Assembly: GCA_016748015.1 (NCBI GenBank)
Contig: JAAOMT010000183.1
Location: 351,144-377,906, forward strand
Source of the DNA: Geosiphon pyriformis uo1
Lineage: Eukaryota; Fungi; Glomeromycota
Length of the DNA stretch: 26,763 bases
Direction of reading: 5' to 3'
Shown here: piece after piece, positions 1-23,614 of the stretch
Numbering within the stretch: the stretch's first letter is position 1
Layout of the letters: every line of letters begins with the position of its first letter
Translations under genes and position numbers: made by a program
Notes under the pieces: generated by a model
What the model saw: the letters and a program-made list of their open reading frames with translations, nothing else
Told to the model about the DNA's origin: nothing
The model's database searches: none

Positions 1-496
1 TTTCATGGTACCTGGACATACCAAATTTAAGTGTGATGGTAGTTTTGGATTGATTAAAAAGCTTTATCGAAAAACAACAGTAGATTGTGTGGATCACATT
101 GTTGAAGTTGTGAAAAAATCAAGTACAGCGGGATTAAACAAAGTTCAGTGCTATGAAAACGGCAAAGGCTTTCAATACTTAGATCTTAATTCCGTGTTGG
201 GAATTTTTTTTAAGAAATTGAGTGGTTTACAAAAGTATCAGCATTTTCTATTTGAAGCAGCTCAACCTGGAGTTGTCAAAGCCCAGCTGGTTGCTAATGG
301 TACTTATACTGAATTTAATTTGTTAAAAACTAAAAAAGCAAGTGTTTCTGAAATTACCAAAGAAATTAAGTCCTTTTCAATCCTAGTACTAACCCCTCCT
401 CCTTTGGATTACAGAAGGCAAGAATACCTTTATCACAATATTCGTCCATTTGTCCGGGATGAATTCAAAGATATCACTTGTCCAGAACCAATCTAA
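1..496 (+). mobile_element. C-terminal part of a transposase-like ORF (GHTKFxxDxxFG family, Sola-like/DUF7869-type); 5' end lies outside the window
   Basis: The frame is open from the window edge (F-MVPGHTKFKCDGSFGLIK...) to TAA at 494-496. The GHTKF..D..FG motif and the C-terminal RQEYLYHNIRPFV...CP match my recollection of a widespread TE-derived family. The superfamily assignment is from memory. Confidence 0.55.
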
Positions 497-547
497 TCTA
501 CACTGCCAATAAATAAAACATATTTATATTACCAAAGCTGTAGAAAT

Positions 548-1537
548 ATGAATAATCAAAACAAAATTGATTCCCTTTACACTTTTATCAAAGAACAAGT
601 CAAACTCAGAGGGAAAAAATTAAAGATCATTGCTGATTGAGATGAATGTTTACAATCTAGTAAGCCTTTTTTATTGTGAGAAGTTGGTAAGAAGAAAATC
701 CCTTCTCCTGAATACTTTAAAAAGTTTTGAGAAAATTCCCAAATTGTTTATTCTACTACCCGTGGTTCTAGACTAAATGAAAAGGCATGAGAATATTCTT
801 ATGTTGACAAAGATGATCCAAATGAGAAAAAGAATATTGAAATGTTAGCTAATGGAACTTTAAAAAGAAGAATAAAAGCCAATCTAGAACCTCACTATAG
901 TAATCTTCCCAAATTCTATGACCGAACCTTTTATCTTTCATTAGCCCAAGAATTATTGCAGGCTTTAAAAGAAGAACTAATTAGTGAATTAGTGATTATC
1001 AGTGCTATGGTCAAAGGTCGGAAAAATGCTGGAAAAGGAAAGAAAGACAAAATAGTTAAAAATTTTGCTAATTTTTCTCAAAGCAGATTGGTTTTAATAG
1101 AAACAGTAATTCCAAAAAAAAGTGAAGAAGAAAGAGGGGATGGCTATAAACCTACTCGTTGAGATTATATTAAAGAAAATATCCCTGATTTTGATATTTT
1201 TATTGATGACAGTGAAATTATCATTGAGGAAACTAGAAAGCTCTTATCTGATAAAACTTATGTCATACCAAATTACAAATACAACCAAAATCTCCAAGCT
1301 CCCAATATCTATCATCTGACAACCAGTGTTAATGATTTAAAAAACAGTGATTTTGTTATTGCTACTTTAGAGATGAAAAATAATCAATTAAAGAAAAAAC
1401 TAAAATTTCTGCAAATACAAAAGAGAAGAGACAGTTGAGTTTTTTGGATGATAAGTAGTGAATCACAAATTTTTATCTTAGTCACTTTAGTAGTTAAAAT
1501 TATAATAGTACAGGAAAAAGGTTTTAGAAAGAACTAA
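548..1537 (+). CDS. HAD-superfamily phosphatase (NT5C/5'-nucleotidase-like), 329 aa, readable only with TGA=Trp (translation table 4); candidate bacterial (Mollicutes/MRE) origin
   Basis: ATG 548 to TAA 1535-1537 with no TAA/TAG. Six in-frame TGA (638, 677, 728, 788, 1160, 1436) and one TGG (1445). Motif I KIIAD[W]DECL, motif II LVIISA, motif IV FDIFIDDS; K-rich segment followed by a hydrophobic C-terminus. No introns. Track ORF 842..1162 is its middle part. Confidence 0.8.
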
Positions 1538-1959
1538 AAAACTATGAGCAAAACAATGACAAAGATCAAATCAAACCATTATTTTTTATTCTTCTTGATA
1601 AATTTCATAATAATAAGTAATTTTTTCTTGATTTAAATATTTCTGGAAAACTTTAGTATTATTAATTTTAAAAACATATGAAGCAATATTTTTTCTTGAG
1701 CTTTCTTTAGAATGCTTTTAATAGTGCTGTAATTCTTGAATTCTATAATGAATTTAATGTAAATTAGTTTCATATATTTTATTTTTATATAAAAATAATC
1801 CTATATTAATCTTGTTATAATTTATATTCATCACATTTTGGTATAATAAAATGAATATTAAAATTAACAAGTTCATAAGTTATAAATGAGCACTATTTTT
1901 ATGTCATCTAATAGAATATTTAGTTTGTTTAATTTTATTGTAGTATGCTCTATATAAAA

Positions 1960-2787
1960 AAAAATTTTGAAATTAGTTATAATATACTTAGACAATATCA
2001 ATATATTTTTTAAAACATTCAATAATTACTTGCTCTATTTTCAACAAATTTTTGATTACTTTTGAAGCATTAAACTAAAACTTAATCCAGACAAATGCTT
2101 CTTTAGAAAGATTAAACTAAAATTTTTGAAACACATAATAGCTAAAAACAGAATAAAACCAAATTTTAACATGGTTTAAAAAGTCAAAAACTTTTCAGTT
2201 TTGACCAATCTATGAAAATTAAGAGGATTCTTAGTTTTAGTTAAATACTATTGCAGATTTGTTAAAGGTTTTTTGAATATCACAAAACCACTTTATTATC
2301 TGTTATCAAAACATGTTCCATACTTATAGAAAAAAAAACAGCAAAAGATTTTTAATTATCTTAAACAACACTTAATAAAACACCAATATTGATTTATTTA
2401 GACTTTAATAAATGCTTTATTGTTATTACAGATGTCTTAAAAAATGCACTGAGAGCCATTTTGTTACAAATCAGACTAGATAATTGAAAACATCTAATTG
2501 TCTATGCCAATTACAGTACCAATATAGTAGAAAAAATATACAGCATAACAAATTTGGAATGTTTTATTATTTATTAAGCAGTACAAAATTAGAAACACTA
2601 TTTTTACTAATTATTTAATCTATATACAGATTACAAAAAACTTATTTAATTACTTAACAAGCTACAATTAGAAAAAAAATATGCACAATAAAATACTTAT
2701 TTGTAATAATTTCTTTACAAAGTACATTATAAAAAAAGAGCCAAGAATACCAATGCTAACAGTTTGTCAAGAATAATACAAATCTAA
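1960..2787 (+). mobile_element. Degenerate Ty3/Gypsy LTR-retrotransposon pol relic (RT C-terminal half + RNase H)
   Basis: From 1982: IYLDNINIF...LKLNPDKCFF..LKFLKHII...LRGFLVLVKYYCRFVKGF..ITKPLYYLL. From 2401: DFNKCFIVITDV...YSITNLECF...YTDYKKL...NTNANSLSR. These match the YLDD, LNPxKC, FLGH, YYRRF, TDAS, TDH and NADxLSR motifs. Many stops and one frameshift near 2380-2400. Confidence 0.9.
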
Positions 2788-3134
2788 CTCTGAATTTATA
2801 AACACAACCATTTATCAGCAATTATATCAGTATCTATTAATACTGCAGTTTAAGAAGAAATTATTTTAACAAAAACAAAATATTATACAAAAACAAGCTT
2901 GTAATTACTTTATTCAAAACAATTAATTATATCATTAAAAATACCAAAACTGTACTATCTTACAACAAATTATAAAAAACAATAAAAGAAAAACTGTTTT
3001 GCATAAGATGTATTTTAATTCAATTGCAAAAAACTTCAACAAAGACACTACTATAAAAAAAATAATAAATGTAAAATGAAAAAATTGTGTTTAATATGTC
3101 TAAATATCAAATTATTAATAAAATAGTAATTTAG

Positions 3135-6300: not shown

Positions 6301-7925
6301 ATGAATTCACAACAAACAGACATTAACAACATTCAAGAAAAGAGACCAAAAACCTTCGGTAACACTGTATATTTAGCTGTTTTTTTTTCTTTTGTCCACT
6401 CAAACTTATCAAAATAGTCCTATACTTTATTCTGAAAACTAGATTTACCAAATATATTAATATTCGGACTATTTGAGTTATCAAATTCCATTATTTTAAA
6501 TTTTGAATCTTTGGTAACATTGGATAATGTTGACAATGAATTCATTTTGGTAAGTTGGAGAGTAGAGTTGTTATACATACATAGTTTTATATACTTCTTT
6601 AACTGATAATCATATTAAAAAAGTATAATCAGTTTTTAACAGTCTTTTTATACAGATTCCGCTTTTGATTCTTCACAACCAATGCAATAGTTTGAAGGCT
6701 TCTAATGGCCTGTAACTCGTTTCATTTACGATCCATTAATATTCAAGGACTTGGATATTAATGCATTTGGTAGTAATTATATTGTAAGTCTCAATAAACA
6801 CAATCTCTTTCAATATGAAAAAAATTAATATTTTTAAGTAAATTCTATTGCTTTTTTGATTAGAGCGGAAATGTTTTTATTTACCAAAATAAATCGATTG
6901 CACTTCAAAAAAAGGCCCTCAAACATACACTCTCTCAAGGTAGAGATACACAGAAATTAAATTTTGTAAGTAAATTTTATTAAACGTATTTAAGTATTAA
7001 CTAAATAAGACTTTTAAATAATGCTTACACAAGTATTTGCCAAGTGTTTCGGACTTTTGGAACGCGTGTTTTAATATAGATACATTAATAGGTAGATGTG
7101 CAAGCATTAACATAGACATTCTTCTTCCAAATGAGCTAAAAGACCCTCAGAACACAATAATAAATTTAGAAATTAAAAATTTTAATGTGAATATCATGGA
7201 AAACCTTGCAATTTATAATAATGCTGGACTAAATATTAAGGCAATTAATGGAAATATCAAGGTTTATGTAAGTATTAAAAATTTTGTGGTAAATTATTAG
7301 AATTCGCTCTCTAACTAATGACTTAATTAAATAAGGATTTATCAGCTCGTTCGGTCTCTTTATCAATAGAGGAAGGTGGTCATATAACTGGAAGCATCGC
7401 TGAAATCCAAAATGAACTATACGTAAGCAATAGCGAAGAAAATTCTATTAGCCTTATTATTAAATCCATTACTGGTAAAGAATCCCCTAGAATAACAGCT
7501 AAAACAGAGAGAGGAGGTTTATCGTTGATTTTTGTAAGTGATATTCCATTTTTATAAAATTATTTTACATGTTCCTCATAATTAATATTTAAAATCCTTT
7601 GTAGGATAACCATACTTTTTCGGGTATATACAATCTAACCACAAAAGAGGGTGATATTTTTATCAAATATCCAGATTCCATAAGTTTTCAAAAGCAAGAT
7701 ACCAATAGAACATTTGGAACTCTTGATACTATAGGGATTAAAATTTTAGATTCAAGCCTAATTGCAAATTCGACTAGTGGGGCTATAAAATTGGGTTTTA
7801 ATCTCTTAGAATTATTATATTTTATATTATATTTTTATTTTGTTTTATATGAATATTTTTTCTATATTGCTATCATTGTAAATCTTTTGGCTTTCAAACT
7901 ATCTATTAGCTTTTTAAAATTTTAG
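6301..7925 (+). pseudogene. Seven-exon gene for a beta-strand-repeat (DUF4097/putative adhesin-like) protein with one apparent 1-bp frameshift
   Basis: Exons 6301-6358, 6443-6549, 6656-6783, 6864-6965, 7034-7267, 7336-7533, 7605-7925. Introns are GT..AG, 68-106 nt, with matching phases. One extra base near 6709 (ggcc>ggccc) is needed to keep the frame. Repeats of the type LNIKAINGNIKV / ITAKTERGGLSL / YNLTTKEGDIFI / IANSTSGAIKL. The domain name is an inference. Confidence 0.65.
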
Positions 7926-8232
7926 AATTAGTTAGGTATTTAAAGAAACTATTAGAATTCGCTTCAGTTTCAATGAAAATATACATTTATTAACTATATA
8001 AAGATATAGAACTAAATTTTACTTTTTGAATATAATGTTACAAAAGATATTTTAATCTTTCTCTTTTTATTTTCAAACCTATTAACAAGAAAGGCAGAAA
8101 TTGTATTTTATAATAGATTTTCAAAGAAAATATCTAATATAAAAACCAAAAGTGGTTAGATTCTATAACTATTAACATATTCTATTAACTAATTAGAAAG
8201 CTAACTCATTTTAAGCAATATTATTAATAAAT

Positions 8233-10446: not shown

Positions 10447-11893
10447 CTAACCATTAAAAAAATCATCGATCCGCGCAGTCAAAAGACGACTTGTATAATA
10501 TGCTCCTGAATGAATTTCTGTTGTCGTTGTTGTTGTCGTTGCTGAGTAATTTGTCGTCGCGTCGTTCTTCAACATTTCTTTTATATGGTTTTCTGATTCT
10601 AAACACTGGCGATACACAGTTTTACCCTCTTCATATGTAAACTCTTCATCTGCAAACTCTTTTATGATTGACACATCATTTGTAGACACCTTAAATAGCT
10701 TATACATTTTCCAAAGTTTCCACAACTTGTTCTGAACTTCTTCCGCAGTAGGACGATTTAATGGATTAGCATCCCAACACTTTACAATAATTTCGACAAT
10801 ACAAAGTGGAATAAGTGGGGAGGTAATTTCAGGTCTAATACCCTTAGAAAGAATATTAAATATGAGAGTATTATCATGAGGACGGTAATATCACCAGCCG
10901 GAGTAAACTTTTCCCCTCTTAAAACTTCTGGTGGAATGTATAATATCACTCCAAAGATCTCTTTTTCACTCGTTGTTGTTGCTTCATTGTTTATTGGTTG
11001 ACATAATCCGAGGTCTCCAATATTTACAGTCTTACGTCCTTTAGAGCTATATTTTAGAATGTTGCCCGAGTGTAGGTCACAATGAACCAGACCAGAAGAA
11101 TGAATTTTTGAAAGTCCTTTAGCTATATCACGCGCGATCCCTAATTTATAAAACCAACTGGTAGAATGAAAATTTTTTTGATAAATATCTTCGCATGTCT
11201 CCATCTTAGGCAAACTCCATCACAATTCCATAGTCGAGTGTTTCAGCGTTTTGCGTAAGCCCCATATCAAAGAGATAGTACCTGAATACCAACCATTTTG
11301 AACTTCAATAGTTCTTTGAATATTTAACTATCAACAGTATATCAAAGTAAATAGATAATATACATTAAATAATTAATAGGTAAATATAAATTAATAATAA
11401 ATATAAATACATAATAATAATAATAATATAATTACCTCTTTAAATATTTCTTCACTGTTCGTTATAATTTTTAGTGCTACTTCCGTCCCTTCTTCATCTC
11501 CTTCCCATCTTTCATATTCCAATGAACCATGATGTTTTATAGCATTAGTATCAATTAATCCATCCATATAAGTTGCTTTAGAAATTATGCCAAACCCTCC
11601 TCTAGCAATTTCTTTGATATTCGAGAAACGCTCCCATAGAATTCATTCATAATAATGAACATTACCATTATCAAATTAATTATCACTCTCAGGTTGATTA
11701 TAGATTGGATTCTTAATTATTACATCCACTTCTTTATTACCGCTTGAAAAGTTGCGGTAAAGCTTTTTAAAAAATGTAAAGTGGCATGCAGCACAGGAAT
11801 TCCTTTCATTTCTTGTAAACTCTCTTGACACAAAAAACACTCGTCGCAATCATGAGTATATGGATAAGTGTTTTTAATTTCTTTGTTTTCCAT
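10447..11893 (-). pseudogene. Protein kinase pseudogene (Glomeromycotina-expanded TKL-like, HxDLHxGN type)
   Basis: Cys-rich N-terminus, then YE*ILWERFSNIKEIARGGFG (EW>E*), VALK, an intron at 11435-11328, HCDLHSGNIL, DLG and YIPPEVL. Frameshifts, stops and loss of the subdomain IX segment after GDI. Confidence 0.9.
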
Positions 11894-15947: not shown

Positions 15948-16823
15948 CTATTTTAATGTAATTTCACTTTCCTGCAAAATTTTTTTGAAGTTTCGGGAAT
16001 TCGAGTGTTTTATAATTTTATATAAACGACGTCCCGGAAATAATTTTCTAACTTTTTTCCAATCTTTTCCATATTCTTGCAACCCTTTGATTAGATTTTG
16101 ATTTTCTTCTTCAGTCCACGGCCCCTTTTTAATCCAAGGAGTAAGAAAGTCGATATAGTGGCGTTTTATACTTTTAGCAGGTCTCTCAAGAAAATGGCTC
16201 ATTTTTCCCCATTGATTACCAAACTTTTTAACCAAACTTTTCAATTTCTCCTCTTCTTCTTTTGTCCATTGACCACGCTTTGGATGCAATAATATATTAA
16301 AATAGCGCTCCGATAGCTGCCTAGGGGTTTTTAAAAGAAAAATCCCTGTTGATGATATAGCTTTCCAGGAAATTTTGCTTTTGCCATATTTTTTTACTGC
16401 AGATATGAGTTCCATATCCTCTTTCGGTGTCCACTTGGTATTTTTAATATAAAGACTTTCAGAGTTTACTAACTTTTGCTTTGTGAGTTTATAATATTGA
16501 AATCTTATAGCACCTATTGTCCGCTCCGGGAAATACTTTTCAGCAATAATCTTCCATGATAACCCATTTTGCCTTCGAAACTCGATCAAAGCTGTTTTCT
16601 CTTCAACAGTCCATTTCGGGCTATCTCTTACACGAGATGCTTTCTTGGTTATTCTTTGATCAGCTATAAGATTCTTAATCTCTAGGGAAATAACCGAATC
16701 ATTTTTCTTGCTAGAATCAGTAAACGATGGAATGGGATTAGCAGGTATTTTAGTTAGGGAGCCCTTTTGAAAAAATGAAAAGAGGGATGGTGACCTATTC
16801 TTGATAAAATTTAGGATATTCAT
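15948..16823 (-). CDS. Myb/SANT repeat protein with 4 repeats, copy A (intact, intronless, 291 aa)
   Basis: Four W-T-x-x-E repeats (KWTVEEK, KWTPKED, QWTKEEE, PWTEEEN), each followed by a G..W motif. The fourth repeat is degenerate at its C-terminal end. Confidence 0.9.
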   Translation of the reverse strand: MNILNFIKNRSPSLFSFFQKGSLTKIPANPIPSFTDSSKKNDSVISLEIKNLIADQRITKKASRVRDSPKWTVEEKTALIEFRRQNGLSWKIIAEKYFPERTIGAIRFQYYKLTKQKLVNSESLYIKNTKWTPKEDMELISAVKKYGKSKISWKAISSTGIFLLKTPRQLSERYFNILLHPKRGQWTKEEEEKLKSLVKKFGNQWGKMSHFLERPAKSIKRHYIDFLTPWIKKGPWTEEENQNLIKGLQEYGKDWKKVRKLFPGRRLYKIIKHSNSRNFKKILQESEITLK

Positions 16824-17175: not shown

Positions 17176-20100
17176 NNNNNNNNNNNNNNNNNNNNNNNNN
17201 NNNNNNNNNNNNNNNNNNNNNNNNNNNNNNNNNNNNNNNNNNNNNNNNNNNNNNNNNNNNNNNNNNNNNNNNNNNNNNNNNNNNNNNNNNNNNNNNNNNN
17301 NNNNNNNNNNNNNNNNNNNNNNNNNNNNNNNNAAATCAAATGATGAATTTTTTATTTAAAAGCCAGTTTAAATATACTTGATAAAAAAATTTAATCATTA
17401 AATCAATGACTAAATTAATAAGCAAACTAATAGTTAAGGTAATAATTTTTTTCATTAAAATAAAATATAAAAAACTAAAAAATAATTTGAATTTGAGTTT
17501 GTTTGTTTTTTTTTAATTGAATATTTGCCACTAATAATTTTTAATTAAAAGTAATTTAATGATCTCATTTTAAATAAAATTTTAATCTTTATAAAGCGCA
17601 ATAATATTTATTTTAAAATTTATTTATTTATTTATTTTATAATTTTTTTATTAAATTTGTTTTCAATAATTTTTTATTGCTTATTTTAGTTCAAAAGAAA
17701 AAAACTCAAAGGTTTAGATAACTCGAAAAATAATATCAAGTTTTTTAATAAGTGGTTAAAAAATCTTAAGACATTCAACAATTTAAACAAATTTTATATA
17801 CATGGGGAAGCTGCAAATAATCCTACTGAATTTTTATCTTATATAAAGAATCTCTTTGACAATAAATAAGAAAATATTCCTTTAATGATGTTTTTGATGG
17901 GTTTTTTCCGAATAATATTAAATCAAACACTTTCATTATAGTTAGTCATTGGAACTAAAAGTTAAATTTATATAATATAATAANNNNNNNNNNNNNNNNN
18001 NNNCCCAGAAGCCAGAGAAGTAATATAGTGACGATATATGTTATGAGCAGGTCTCTCAAGAAAATGGCTTACTTTTCTCCATTGATTACCAAACTTTTTG
18101 ACCAAAATTTTTCTTCTGATTTCGTTCATTTCCCACGCTTTGGACATATTAATATATTATAATAGCGATACTTCAGCTGAGCAACATTTTTCTCAAGAAA
18201 AATTCCATTTAATAATATACCCTTCCAGGAAATTTTGCTTGTGCCATATTTTTCCAAATCTGTGTTCGATATCCTCCCTTGGCGTTCACTTAGCAGCTCC
18301 AATACAAAAAGTTCCAGAGTTTAATGACTACTGCTTTTTGAGACTATAGTATTGAACTCTTATAGCATCTGCTGTCCGATCTGGGAAATACTTTTCAGCA
18401 ATAATCTTCCATGATAACCCATTTTGCCTTCGAAACTCAATCAAAGCTGTCTTCTCTTCAACAGTCCATTTCTGATAATCTCTCACTTGAGGTGCTTTCC
18501 CGGTTATTCTTTGATCAGCTATACGATTCTTAATTTCTAGGGAAATAACCGAATCATTTTTCGTACTAGAACCGGTAAACGATGGCAGGTATTTTAACCA
18601 GGGAGTCCTTTTGAAAAAATAAAAAGAGAAATACTATTCTATCCTCAAAAATCTTGATCAAATTTAGGATATTCATCAAATAAACGCCTAATATCAAAAG
18701 TTGTACCAATTACTGATTGAAGTTTTAGTCAATAATTGATAAAATAAGGCTTTTCCCGTTAAAATGATGANNNNNNNNNNNNNNNNNNNNNNNNNNNNNN
18801 NNNNNNNNNNNNNNNNNNNNNNNNNNNNNNNNNNNNNNNNNNNNNNNNNNNNNNNNNNNNNNNNNNNNNNNNNNNNNNNNNNNNNNNNNNNNNNNNNNNN
18901 NNNNNNNNNNNNNNNNNNNNNNNNNNNNNNNNNNNNNNNNNNNNNNNNNNNNNNNNNNNNNNNNNNNNNNNNNNNNNNNNNNNNNNNNNNNNNNNNNNNN
19001 NNNNNNNNNNNNNNNNNNNNNNNNNNNNNNNNNNNNNNNNNNNNNNNNNNNNNNNNNNNNNNNNNNNNNNNNNNNNNNNNNNNNNNNNNNNNNNNNNNNN
19101 NNNNNNNNNNNNNNNNNNNNNNNNNNNNNNNNNNNNNNNNNNNNNNNNNNNNNNNNNNNNNNNNNNNNNNNNNNNNNNNNNNNNNNNNNNNNNNNNNNNN
19201 NNNNNNNNNNNNNNNNNNNNNNNNNNNNNNNNNNNNNNNNNNNNNNNNNNNNNNNNNNNNNNNNNNNNNNNNNNNNNNNNNNNNNNNNNNNNNNNNNNNN
19301 NNNNNNNNNNNNNNNNNNNNNNNNNNNNNNNNNNNNNNNNNNNNNNNNNNNNNNNNNNNNNNNNNNNNNNNNNNNNNNNNNNNNNNNNNNNNNNNNNNNN
19401 NNNNNNNNNNNNNNNNNNNNNNNNNNNNNNNNNNNNNNNNNNNNNNNNNNNNNNNNNNNNNNNNNNNNNNNNNNNNNNNNNNNNNNNNNNNNNNNNNNNN
19501 NNNNNNNNNNNNNNNNNNNNNNNNNNNNNNNNNNNNNNNNNNNNNNNNNNNNNNNNNNNNNNNNNNNNNNNNNNNNNNNNNNNNNNNNNNNNNNNNNNNN
19601 NNNNNNNNNNNNNNNNNNNNNNNNNNNNNNNNNNNNNNNNTTGTATTGATTTACTTGTATGCAATGCATCAAGAAAATTAAAATCAGTAGTCATTGCTCA
19701 TTTCAAAATTTTGGTGCTTTTAAGAATGTTAATATTGGATTCTTGCCAGTTATGCACAAAACAAACGAAAAAATTTGTATGCCTGAAAATATTTTTAATG
19801 AATTATTATGCTATATATATATATACAAGTGTTCAATCCAAAAATAACATATTGTTTTATTGATAAATAACACCATATCTCACCACTTGCTGTCTGTTTA
19901 AATAATAAAGAAGATAAAATTCTAAAAATGGTAATAAAATTTAAATTGAACAGTAATATTAATTTTTTGTTTTTAAATAGTTAATAAATAATTTATTTAA
20001 TTTAGCGGATTCAACAAAAAATATTAACTTTAACTCTGAAAATATTGAAATTTAATAGAATTAATTTTCTGTTTTTAAATAATATCTGAATTAATAAAAA

Positions 20101-22765: not shown

Positions 22766-23614
22766 ATGAATATCCTAAATTTTATCAAGAATAGGTCACC
22801 ATCCCTCTTTTTATTTTTTAAAAAGGGCTCCCTAACTAAAATACCTGCTAATCCCATTCCATCGTTTACTGATTCTAGCAAGAAAAATGATTCGGTTATT
22901 TCCTTAGAGATTAAGAATCTTATAGCTGATCAAAGAATAATCGGGAAAGCACCTCGAGTAAGAGCTTTTCAGAGATGGACCGTTGAAGAGAACACAGCTT
23001 TGATCGAGGCTCGAAGGCAAAATGGGTTATCATGGAAGATTATTGCTGAAAAATATTTCCCGGAGCGGACAATAGGTGCTTTAAGATTTCAATATTGTAA
23101 ACTCAAAAAGCAGAAGTTAGTAAACTCTGAAAGTTTTTATAATGGAGCTGTTAAGTGGACACCAAGGGAGGATATCGAACTCAGATCTGCAGTGGAAAAA
23201 TATGGCACAAGCAAAATTTCCTGGAAAGCTATATTATCGACAGGAATTTTTCCTGAAAAAAATGTTGCTCAGTTGAAGTATCGCTATTATAATATATTAC
23301 TATGTCCAAAGCATGGCAAATGGACTAAAGCAGAAGACGAGATATTAAAAATTTTGGTTAAAAAGTTTGGTAATCAATGGAGAAAAGTAAGCCATTTTCT
23401 TGAGAGACCTGCTCATAACATATATCGTCACTATATTACTTCTCTGGCTTCTGGGATTAAAAGAGGCCCTTGGACTGACGAAGAAAATCAAAATCTAATC
23501 AAAGGGTTGCAAGAATATGGAAAAGATTGGGAAAAAATAAAGAGATTAGTGCCAGGACGTCATTTGATCAAAATCAAAAAACGTTCTATGATTCACCAAA
23601 AATTAAACAGATAA
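22766..23614 (+). CDS. Myb/SANT repeat protein with 4 repeats, copy D (intact, intronless, 282 aa)
   Basis: Repeats RWTVEEN, KWTPRED, KWTKAED, PWTDEEN; clear paralog of copy A. Confidence 0.9.
   Translation: MNILNFIKNRSPSLFLFFKKGSLTKIPANPIPSFTDSSKKNDSVISLEIKNLIADQRIIGKAPRVRAFQRWTVEENTALIEARRQNGLSWKIIAEKYFPERTIGALRFQYCKLKKQKLVNSESFYNGAVKWTPREDIELRSAVEKYGTSKISWKAILSTGIFPEKNVAQLKYRYYNILLCPKHGKWTKAEDEILKILVKKFGNQWRKVSHFLERPAHNIYRHYITSLASGIKRGPWTDEENQNLIKGLQEYGKDWEKIKRLVPGRHLIKIKKRSMIHQKLNR

Follow-up and report, generated by a model that had tools for sequence, protein, structure and literature searches.

How does a gene that can be read to its end only with UGA as a tryptophan codon come to lie among the nuclear genes of a fungus? 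This question is raised by a 26,763-nucleotide stretch of contig JAAOMT010000183.1 of Geosiphon pyriformis uo1 (positions 351,144 to 377,906 of the forward strand), hereafter called the window, to which all coordinates below refer unless another sequence is named. Near its left end it carries such a gene, here termed ORF2 (open reading frame 2). The original prediction, made from the sequence alone, took this gene for symbiont DNA that had either been integrated recently or been joined in by the assembler. Our analysis leads to a different answer: the stretch 548-1537 belongs, as its accessory gene, to one copy of a Sola1-like (DUF7869) cut-and-paste transposon with terminal inverted repeats (TIRs), which resides in the nuclear genome of G. 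pyriformis. The name 'Sola1' is a label that we take to fit the element; what was computed is the DUF7869 match alone. Three parts of the element fall within the window:

2-496, plus strand: C-terminal 164 codons of the transposase, closed by TAA at 494-496; its N-terminal part precedes the window
548-1537, plus strand: ORF2, 329 sense codons and a TAA stop; open only when TGA is read as Trp
1578-1955, no strand assigned: right TIR, with the terminal sequence ...GTAGTATGCTCT up to 1951 and ATAT behind it at 1952-1955

ORF2 is written for genetic code 4 (UGA=Trp). Re-translation returned the 329-codon frame that had been predicted, in which six of the seven Trp codons are TGA (638-640, 677-679, 728-730, 788-790, 1160-1162 and 1436-1438), the seventh is the only TGG (at 1445), and neither TAA nor TAG occurs ahead of the terminal TAA. 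Also as predicted, the gene has no introns and terminates after 30 amino acids in the standard code. At the base composition of 548-1537 (A 0.41, T 0.30, G 0.16, C 0.13; 29% G+C), a run of 329 codons free of TAA and TAG is expected with P of about 4e-11, and none of 20,000 shuffled ORF2 sequences had an open frame; 12 CAA, 2 CAG and 1 CGA codons are intact. All six TGA codons are followed by G, because the Trp residues precede Asp, Glu or Val. In an alignment with the window protein read in code 4, the first TGA (in D-W-D) corresponds to Trp in 14 of 14 homologues, and the third (F-W-E) and fifth (R-W) do so in most of them, so that the assignment of Trp to UGA holds at conserved sites. Across the ORF2 copies of the genome, the Trp columns mostly have TGA in common, now and then TGG, and in some copies TAA or TAG. 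Two copies are fully open, namely that of the window and that on contig C457 (326 codons), the most divergent intact copy; a third, on C673, is open with an altered C-terminus. The window and C457 proteins are 51% identical; the synonymous divergence (dS) of the two genes is about 1.5 and hence near saturation, the ratio of nonsynonymous to synonymous divergence (dN/dS) is 0.27, and TGA and TGG are swapped at three of the six Trp sites that they have in common. Scans of window positions 1-2200 for bacterial expression signals gave sigma-70 promoter-like sites only at chance level and no intrinsic terminator.

The setting of ORF2 was determined from 9-kb stretches around 12 copies. At the DNA level, ORF2 has 14 matches in the genome (66-100% identity, contigs of 0.2-2.7 Mb), and the large nuclear contigs of G. 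pyriformis contain at least 12 ORF2 copies and at least 35 DUF7869 transposase matches, 15 of which have TGA as their only in-frame stop. Full transposase copies score 54-66 bits against the Pfam profile DUF7869; the piece at 2-496 scores 25.3 bits, just below the cut-off of 26 bits. The element is ordered as left TIR, variable standard-code cargo, transposase, ORF2 and right TIR, and the window holds its right arm. In all 12 examined copies the transposase ends with FKDITCPEPI, 51 nt ahead of ORF2. Transposase and ORF2 form a common core of about 3.3 kb, and the gaps between the co-directional genes (transposase, ORF2 and, where present, ORF3) measure 3-200 nt. Inverted arms of 300-440 bp lie at the element borders and are 76-88% identical in four copies. 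For the window copy, the left arm is found 4.4 kb upstream of the window (L015 2025-2343 against 7722-8045, inverted, 86% identity), and the interior of the right TIR is rearranged near 1901. Ten copy termini fit one consensus with flanking ATAT, beyond which the DNA is unrelated; ATAT occurs at nearly every end as a constant palindrome, so that a duplication is not separable from the last bases of the element itself.

The segment between the left arm and the transposase varies, with a cargo that differs from copy to copy, has 37-46% G+C, uses TGG and follows the standard code. Within the kinase cargo of C673, a stretch GTAGGT...TAG, read by eye, interrupts and joins two frames; by its sequence it is an apparent spliceosomal GT-AG intron. 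None of the 12 Geosiphon copies retains an intact transposase, the best one, on C457, having an N-terminal frameshift. The C457 copy (L026 4245-7205) is a compact element of about 2.95 kb without cargo, consisting of terminal motif, transposase, ORF2 and terminal motif; its right end is intact (...GTTGCAGCACGCCCC, then ATAT), its left terminal 16 nt are altered, and its ORF2 is open in code 4. No tRNA gene was found in the window or in the 12 element copies. The predicted recent integration or assembler join does not agree with these data: ORF2 is an accessory gene at 12 or more nuclear loci with a constant layout, the DUF7869 transposase upstream of it is itself written in code 4, and their junction recurs in an independent soil metagenome.

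The transposase allowed code usage and selection to be followed across many more genes. Its dN/dS is 0.09-0.18. A scan of metagenomes of the Joint Genome Institute (JGI) returned 80 soil contigs with the transposase, and 20 soil transposase genes of 583-604 codons contain 2-4 TGA each without any TAA or TAG and are open only in code 4. Across 22 full-length transposases, five Trp columns are invariant, and in these the ratio of TGA to TGG is 18:3, 12:10, 4:18, 17:5 and 14:8. Such free exchange of the two codons at invariant Trp positions rules out decay of TGG and speaks against rare read-through. Judged by these alignments, TGA behaves as a true synonym of TGG in the transposase, and the substitution patterns indicate that purifying selection has acted on ORF2 and transposase in a system with UGA decoded as Trp. 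Assemblies of Ambispora, Diversispora, Gigaspora and Dentiscutata contain close relatives of the transposase, and so does a very large number of soil contigs; among the database relatives, many are fragments of 173 aa, which is the piece between two TGA codons.

Environmental contigs show further accessory genes behind the transposase. In one JGI sample, the same transposase, here with 2-3 TGA, occurs on fungal-looking contigs as long as 119 kb, with Crinkler or kinase cargo upstream of it; in place of ORF2 these contigs have an AT-rich, TGA-using gene for a tail-anchored leucine-rich repeat (LRR) protein. On Glomeromycotina-like contigs of JGI 3300063414, this LRR gene (L035 11417-13003 and L036 11430-12842) comprises 470-528 codons with 32-33% G+C, 2-4 TGA and a C-terminal anchor, and its product shares 41% identity across 139 aa with an AIG1-LRR protein encoded by the code-4 contig L027. 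Within the soil contigs, composition and codon usage form a gradient from the cargo (40-55% G+C, no TGA) through the transposase (30-41% G+C, TGA and TGG mixed) to the accessory genes (25-33% G+C, far more TGA than TGG), which encode HAD-like, LRR or coiled-coil proteins. When window positions 1-3000 were compared with public sequencing runs, soil and rhizosphere pieces matched the transposase end, ORF2 and the TIR at 90-99% identity, none of them extending past about 1900. One soil contig crosses the transposase-ORF2 junction (463-1123), and a rhizosphere metatranscriptome contig equals 790-1012 with one mismatch, which hints at transcription of ORF2. Upstream of the element, two soil contigs carry a standard-code gene (L072 5-526 and L049 6-911, both minus strand) whose product starts with MDLLP...GTDPG; this start is presumably reminiscent of the RuvC-I motif of TnpB/Fanzor nucleases.

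Where do ORF2 and the transposase have relatives outside fungal contigs? Among 1.8 billion representative proteins, the 157-aa piece of the C725 copy found 89 relatives, the full-length ones having 300-320 aa. Two of them lie on contigs of 32-33% G+C with tightly packed genes, all of which use TGA as Trp (e.g. 12 TGA : 3 TGG); the gene content of these code-4 contigs includes AIG1 GTPases, LRR proteins, HIT proteins, a phage integrase and a phi29-type capsid protein. A scan of 185,579 species representatives, limited to a motif pattern, returned a single named genome with the ORF2 family, that of DhMRE, the Mollicutes-related endobacterium (MRE) of Dentiscutata heterogama. A profile search detected three copies of the family in DhMRE (E 4e-40 to 6e-29), with 3-4 TGA each, and none in four other, incomplete genomes of the DhMRE family. 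The relatives with Trp at TGA that had been foreseen among MRE or Mollicutes-type proteins were hence found, in DhMRE and on the code-4 contigs, and in the scans run the ORF2 family occurred nowhere else outside DUF7869 transposons. In the ORF2 tree, which is unrooted and has a backbone without support, Geosiphon ORF2 and a transposon-linked soil copy form one clade among the MRE and code-4 homologues (98 in the Shimodaira-Hasegawa-like approximate likelihood ratio test, SH-aLRT); the transposon-linked sequence of L072 is placed elsewhere on a long branch. On two code-4, MRE-like metagenome contigs (L028 3273-5864 and L027 2607-4379), a duplicated HAD-like domain occurs as a fusion with a HIT (Ap4A hydrolase-like) domain; the gene on L028 is located near one for a phi29-type major capsid protein. 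By this gene content, some ORF2 relatives may be borne by phages or islands.

The transposase, too, has a relative in an endobacterium. A search with a full-length environmental protein detected it in the metagenome-assembled genome of Ca. Moeniiplasma glomeromycotorum (GCA_021409605.1), on two near-identical 125-kb code-4 contigs of 30% G+C (L158 9225-10990). There it sits between ResIII and N6_Mtase genes with 11 and 13 TGA, respectively, contains 7 TGA and 2 TGG itself, and shows 50-55% identity with the nuclear subfamily. The tree resolves it as the sister of the entire code-4 subfamily (support 96); the sister group of this pair is formed by the Rhizophagus and Gigaspora DUF7869 transposases, which are written in the standard code (97). 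The flanking genes are of the restriction-modification type (ResIII helicase; N6_Mtase/specificity), and an LRR-tyrosine-kinase-like gene follows 8 kb downstream.

What kind of protein does ORF2 encode? Its product of about 38 kDa contains four motifs in the order typical of HAD enzymes (DxD, Ser/Thr, Lys, DD), and across the family these positions are either invariant or conservatively substituted:

626-652, plus strand: motif I context IIAD-TGA-DECL, seen in the sequence
635-643, plus strand: motif I, Asp30-Trp31(TGA)-Asp32; D-W-D is invariant in eight full-length homologues
989-1009, plus strand: motif II strand LVIISAM with Ser152 at the strand end; aligns with IISSY / ITTSY of homologues
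1034-1066, plus strand: Lys-rich stretch with the candidate motif III Lys, positioned by homologue alignment
1193-1213, plus strand: motif IV DIFIDDS with the acidic pair Asp220-Asp221, from sequence and homologues
1466-1510, plus strand: putative tail anchor made up of a hydrophobic segment with basic residues behind it; the same in homologues

The two Asp of motif I serve HAD enzymes as nucleophile and general acid/base. A TGA between this Asp pair, with motifs II and IV following in frame, had been part of the original prediction, and all three were located at the expected positions. In an eight-row alignment of homologues (A2), D27-W28-D29 and W58 are invariant, as are D214, F215, D216, D220 and D221. 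The motif IV consensus of the family is PDFDIFIDDN. K170 of the homologue P0003 is likewise invariant, and the window protein has its Lys cluster at 163-168. The C-termini of the aligned homologues consist of a hydrophobic helix and a Lys/Arg tail at the matching position.

Fold and family searches used ORF2 pieces, the 157-aa stop-free piece of C725 and database homologues, and the structural model is an AlphaFold2 model of P0003, not of the window protein. This model has a mean predicted local distance difference test score (pLDDT) of 74.6 overall and of more than 85 in the core; motif II forms a strand at residues 148-158, and a long helix at 269-321 makes up the C-terminus. Foldseek returned HAD enzymes as all of its top matches, which were weak (E about 2e-3). 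In VIA-align, both runs aligned 175 residues with the class B acid phosphatase AphA (Z 10.4 and 10.2), a deoxyribonucleotidase-like protein scored Z 8.7, and the top 50 were mostly HAD enzymes, with other Rossmann-like folds at Z 8.5-9.9. By sequence, Pfam assigned no family to the stop-free ORF2 pieces or to 19 family members, NCBIfam and PHROG assigned none to six full-length homologues, a profile search with the family gave no match among PDB sequences, and the curated HAD/NT5C profiles of Pfam and NCBIfam did not match. Because no HAD/NT5C profile matches, the HAD assignment rests on motifs and predicted fold, and we propose with moderate confidence that ORF2 is a tail-anchored HAD-like phosphatase, its predicted Rossmann-like core coming closest to AphA and to deoxyribonucleotidase-like proteins. 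Of the predicted membrane-anchored, nucleotidase-like HAD enzyme, fold and anchor are accordingly plausible, and the match to a HAD/NT5C profile did not materialize. The ORF2 family is an unannotated family of tail-anchored HAD-like proteins in endobacteria. In some relatives, the HAD-like domain is fused to HIT nucleotide hydrolases, and purine and pyrimidine synthesis are reported to be lacking in some MRE (PMC13315312, citing Sun et al. 2019); together, these two points hint at a nucleotide substrate. The model and motifs would be compatible with a membrane-displayed phosphatase or nucleotidase by which a nucleotide-auxotrophic endobacterium may scavenge host nucleotides.

The fungus itself gave no sign of reading TGA as Trp in the genes examined. 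Two Myb genes of the window (15948-16823, minus strand, and 22766-23614, plus strand) contain nine and eight TGG, respectively, and no TGA, and the tubulin exons of the genome have no internal stops. These Myb genes are intron-free paralogues, each encoding four or five Myb repeats (Pfam E 1e-39 and 3e-36), and end in TAG and TAA in the standard code. Long frames in the examined Geosiphon loci are closed by 14 TAA, 9 TAG and 9 TGA, a count that is confounded by introns and other repeats. A genome-wide pattern for the anticodon loop and T-arm of a UCA-anticodon tRNA gave 75 matches against 124 for the control, and its CCA version missed the fungus's own tRNA-Trp, so that the pattern has no power; ARAGORN recognized a tRNA in none of 38 matches to this UCA pattern, which had failed its positive control.

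Outside the element, the window consists of ordinary eukaryotic DNA. Besides the Myb genes, 10447-11219 (minus strand) holds fragments of a TKL-like protein kinase in two overlapping frames, probably a frameshifted or intron-split gene, and 18690-19870 is about 1.1 kb of near-pure A+T simple sequence (G+C 0-8%) with spurious open frames in all six. Elsewhere in the genome, the frames of a repeat family (L129, L137, L140, L142 and L148 on C445, C546, C568, C578 and C596:821556-824600) end in TGA, behind which 130-340 further codons are open (423 + 340 codons in L148); by these frames, the repeat may be another code-4 element.

What history could have produced a transposon of this kind? The anatomy, code, kinship and multi-copy nuclear residence of the element are established by the data above. 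In the simplest sequence of events, which we propose here, a fungal Sola1-like transposon would have entered endobacteria and adapted to the endobacterial code. The element would then have gained endobacterial surface-protein genes, and members of the code-4 lineage would have come back into fungal nuclei. The nuclear copies would be silent and decaying, as fungal ribosomes would stop ORF2 after codon 30. On balance we lean, if cautiously, towards a code-4 lineage that is maintained and expressed in endobacteria, its nuclear copies being untranslatable spill-over. Expression in endobacteria is favoured because all modules are open in code 4, with only the cargo in the standard code, because the core genes are arranged like an operon, and because TGA is synonymous with TGG.

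Several observations weigh against this proposal. Every long contig with the code-4 subfamily looks fungal, and the varying cargo with its apparent intron implies capture and movement in nuclear DNA, which needs a transposase in the nucleus; we know of no mechanism by which a transposase made in a bacterium would act on host chromatin. Searches for the transposase came back empty for the complete DhMRE genome, for five genomes of its GTDB family and for 401 of its order. The Moeniiplasma copy is frameshifted once, has no detectable TIR motif and is not adjoined by ORF2. The phosphatase function, moreover, rests on motifs and on a medium-confidence model of a homologue. A bolder version of the proposal, which we hold only tentatively and consider somewhat improbable, is that of a living shuttle between domains, i.e. 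a eukaryote-derived transposon that replicates and is expressed in MRE, repeatedly enters fungal nuclei and there picks up intron-bearing genes.

The element could instead be a nuclear transposon translated in the fungal cytoplasm, with UGA read as Trp by a suppressor or unusual tRNA-Trp or through leaky termination, and with ORF2 captured from MRE; the several UGA codons would then keep transposase output very low as a form of self-restraint. Such decoding would be in line with the nuclear, fungal nature of all long contexts, with the precise ATAT-flanked ends in unrelated flanks and with the occurrence of the subfamily in Geosiphon, Ambispora, Diversispora, Gigaspora and Dentiscutata. The varied cargo and its one apparent intron point to activity in the nucleus, the transposase is missing from most MRE genomes searched, and the metatranscriptome match to 790-1012 fits as well. 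Yet the host genes examined do not use TGA for Trp, and neither the window nor the 12 copies contain a tRNA. Alternation of TGA and TGG is expected only with efficient decoding of UGA, not with rare read-through of three to six stops per message. Eukaryotes do not as a rule translate a second cistron located 51 nt downstream of the first, and the closest outgroup of the code-4 clade lies in an MRE chromosome. We regard cytoplasmic decoding, the main rival, as unlikely, while noting that a fungus that decodes UGA as Trp for the messages of the element only would be an equally novel alternative.

The remaining explanations do without a code-4 transposon. That the window holds a plain piece of endobacterial chromosome, recently integrated or joined in as an MRE read by the assembler, would account for code 4, low G+C, the lack of introns and the MRE homologues. 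It is made very improbable by at least 12 copies of 66-96% identity on different Mb-scale contigs within a constant transposase-ORF2-TIR frame, by the absence of any other MRE gene beside a copy, the neighbour being a eukaryote-type transposase, and by contigs of the source sample that cover both ends of the ORF, along with the soil contig that spans 463-1123. The idea of a decayed standard-code pseudogene, in which TGG turned into TGA by AT-biased or repeat-directed G>A change (of the type of repeat-induced point mutation, RIP, or of APOBEC), could draw on the very AT-rich genome, on TAA or TAG at Trp columns in some copies and on the G behind six of six TGA. Decay of this kind had already been called unlikely in the original prediction, and we consider it barely tenable: 329 codons lack TAA and TAG, the 12 CAA are intact, the TGA are common to lineages with saturated dS under a dN/dS of 0.09-0.3, and only code 4 keeps 20 independent full-length environmental genes open. 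A RIP-like or APOBEC-like origin of the TGA codons is ruled out by the selection tests. Similarly hard to credit is a mitochondrial origin, as nuclear mitochondrial DNA (NUMT) or as the remnant of a mitochondrial plasmid, which shares with the element the code only (fungal mitochondria read UGA as Trp); relatives of ORF2 occur in MRE genomes and on MRE-like contigs alongside AIG1, LRR and restriction-modification genes, the surroundings contain no mitochondrial gene, and the element has TIRs and a DDE-type transposase.

Returning to a code-4 lineage at home in endobacteria, its significance lies in the traffic of genes between the two partners. Gene exchange between arbuscular mycorrhizal (AM) fungi and their endobacteria, which are ancient and Mycoplasma-like, is documented, without a known vehicle. 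The core genes of the family described here are readable only in the bacterial code, yet dozens of copies reside in fungal chromosomes of several genera and carry fungal genes; the shuttle, if true, would be a physical vehicle of two-way gene traffic between Glomeromycotina and endobacteria. Can a mobile element cross repeatedly between bacterium and nucleus, where is its transposase synthesized, and could the difference in code act as a switch that confines expression to one partner? For annotation, the consequence is that gene callers using the standard code split these genes into fragments of 30-270 aa, and pieces of this kind account for many database entries, such as the recurrent 173-aa 'proteins' of soil metagenomes. 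The literature searched, which did not extend to the primary gene-exchange papers of 2015, contained no description of code-4 transposons in Glomeromycotina nuclei. The present work contributes the ORF2 selection tests, the series of intact environmental code-4 genes, the fold test, the DhMRE copies and the tree position of the Moeniiplasma transposase.

How does the element compare with known systems? At the protein level, the nearest are AphA, the best structural match of the ORF2 family (P0003 model), and the 5'(3')-deoxyribonucleotidase-like HAD group (DDDD; PDB 1z88, 1n8n, 3bwv), which have DxD, Ser/Thr, Lys and acidic pair in the same order. Unlike these, the ORF2 family has a Trp between the two Asp, a C-terminal membrane anchor and an insert of about 70 poorly modelled residues after motif I; it matches no sequence profile of the group, and some relatives are fused to HIT domains.

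As a transposon, the code-4 subfamily resembles the Sola1-type/DUF7869 elements of Glomeromycotina (e.g. Rhizophagus irregularis GLOIN_2v1484099) in its DDE-type transposase, TIRs, many nuclear copies and captured host genes, and the standard-code DUF7869 proteins of Rhizophagus and Gigaspora are its sister group with 33-40% identity. It differs from them in that most Trp codons are TGA, that a relative lies inside an endobacterial chromosome, and that one or two tightly packed, AT-rich code-4 accessory genes follow the transposase. MRE genomes are described (Naito et al. 2015; Torres-Cortes et al. 2015, as cited in PMC4916391 and PMC13315312) as containing numerous mobile elements along with genes that stem from the host. 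The exchange between MRE and AM fungi involves the same partners as here; the published cases, as these citing papers relate them, are fungal genes in MRE, whereas here the fungal nucleus harbours numerous copies of a eukaryote-type transposon in bacterial code, which provides a concrete vehicle. With NUMTs and Wolbachia inserts, finally, the Geosiphon element has in common that nuclear DNA harbours silent genes written for a different translation system. NUMTs and Wolbachia inserts arise as random fragments through end-joining, whereas the Geosiphon element has fixed TIR ends, a transposase and purifying selection throughout the family.

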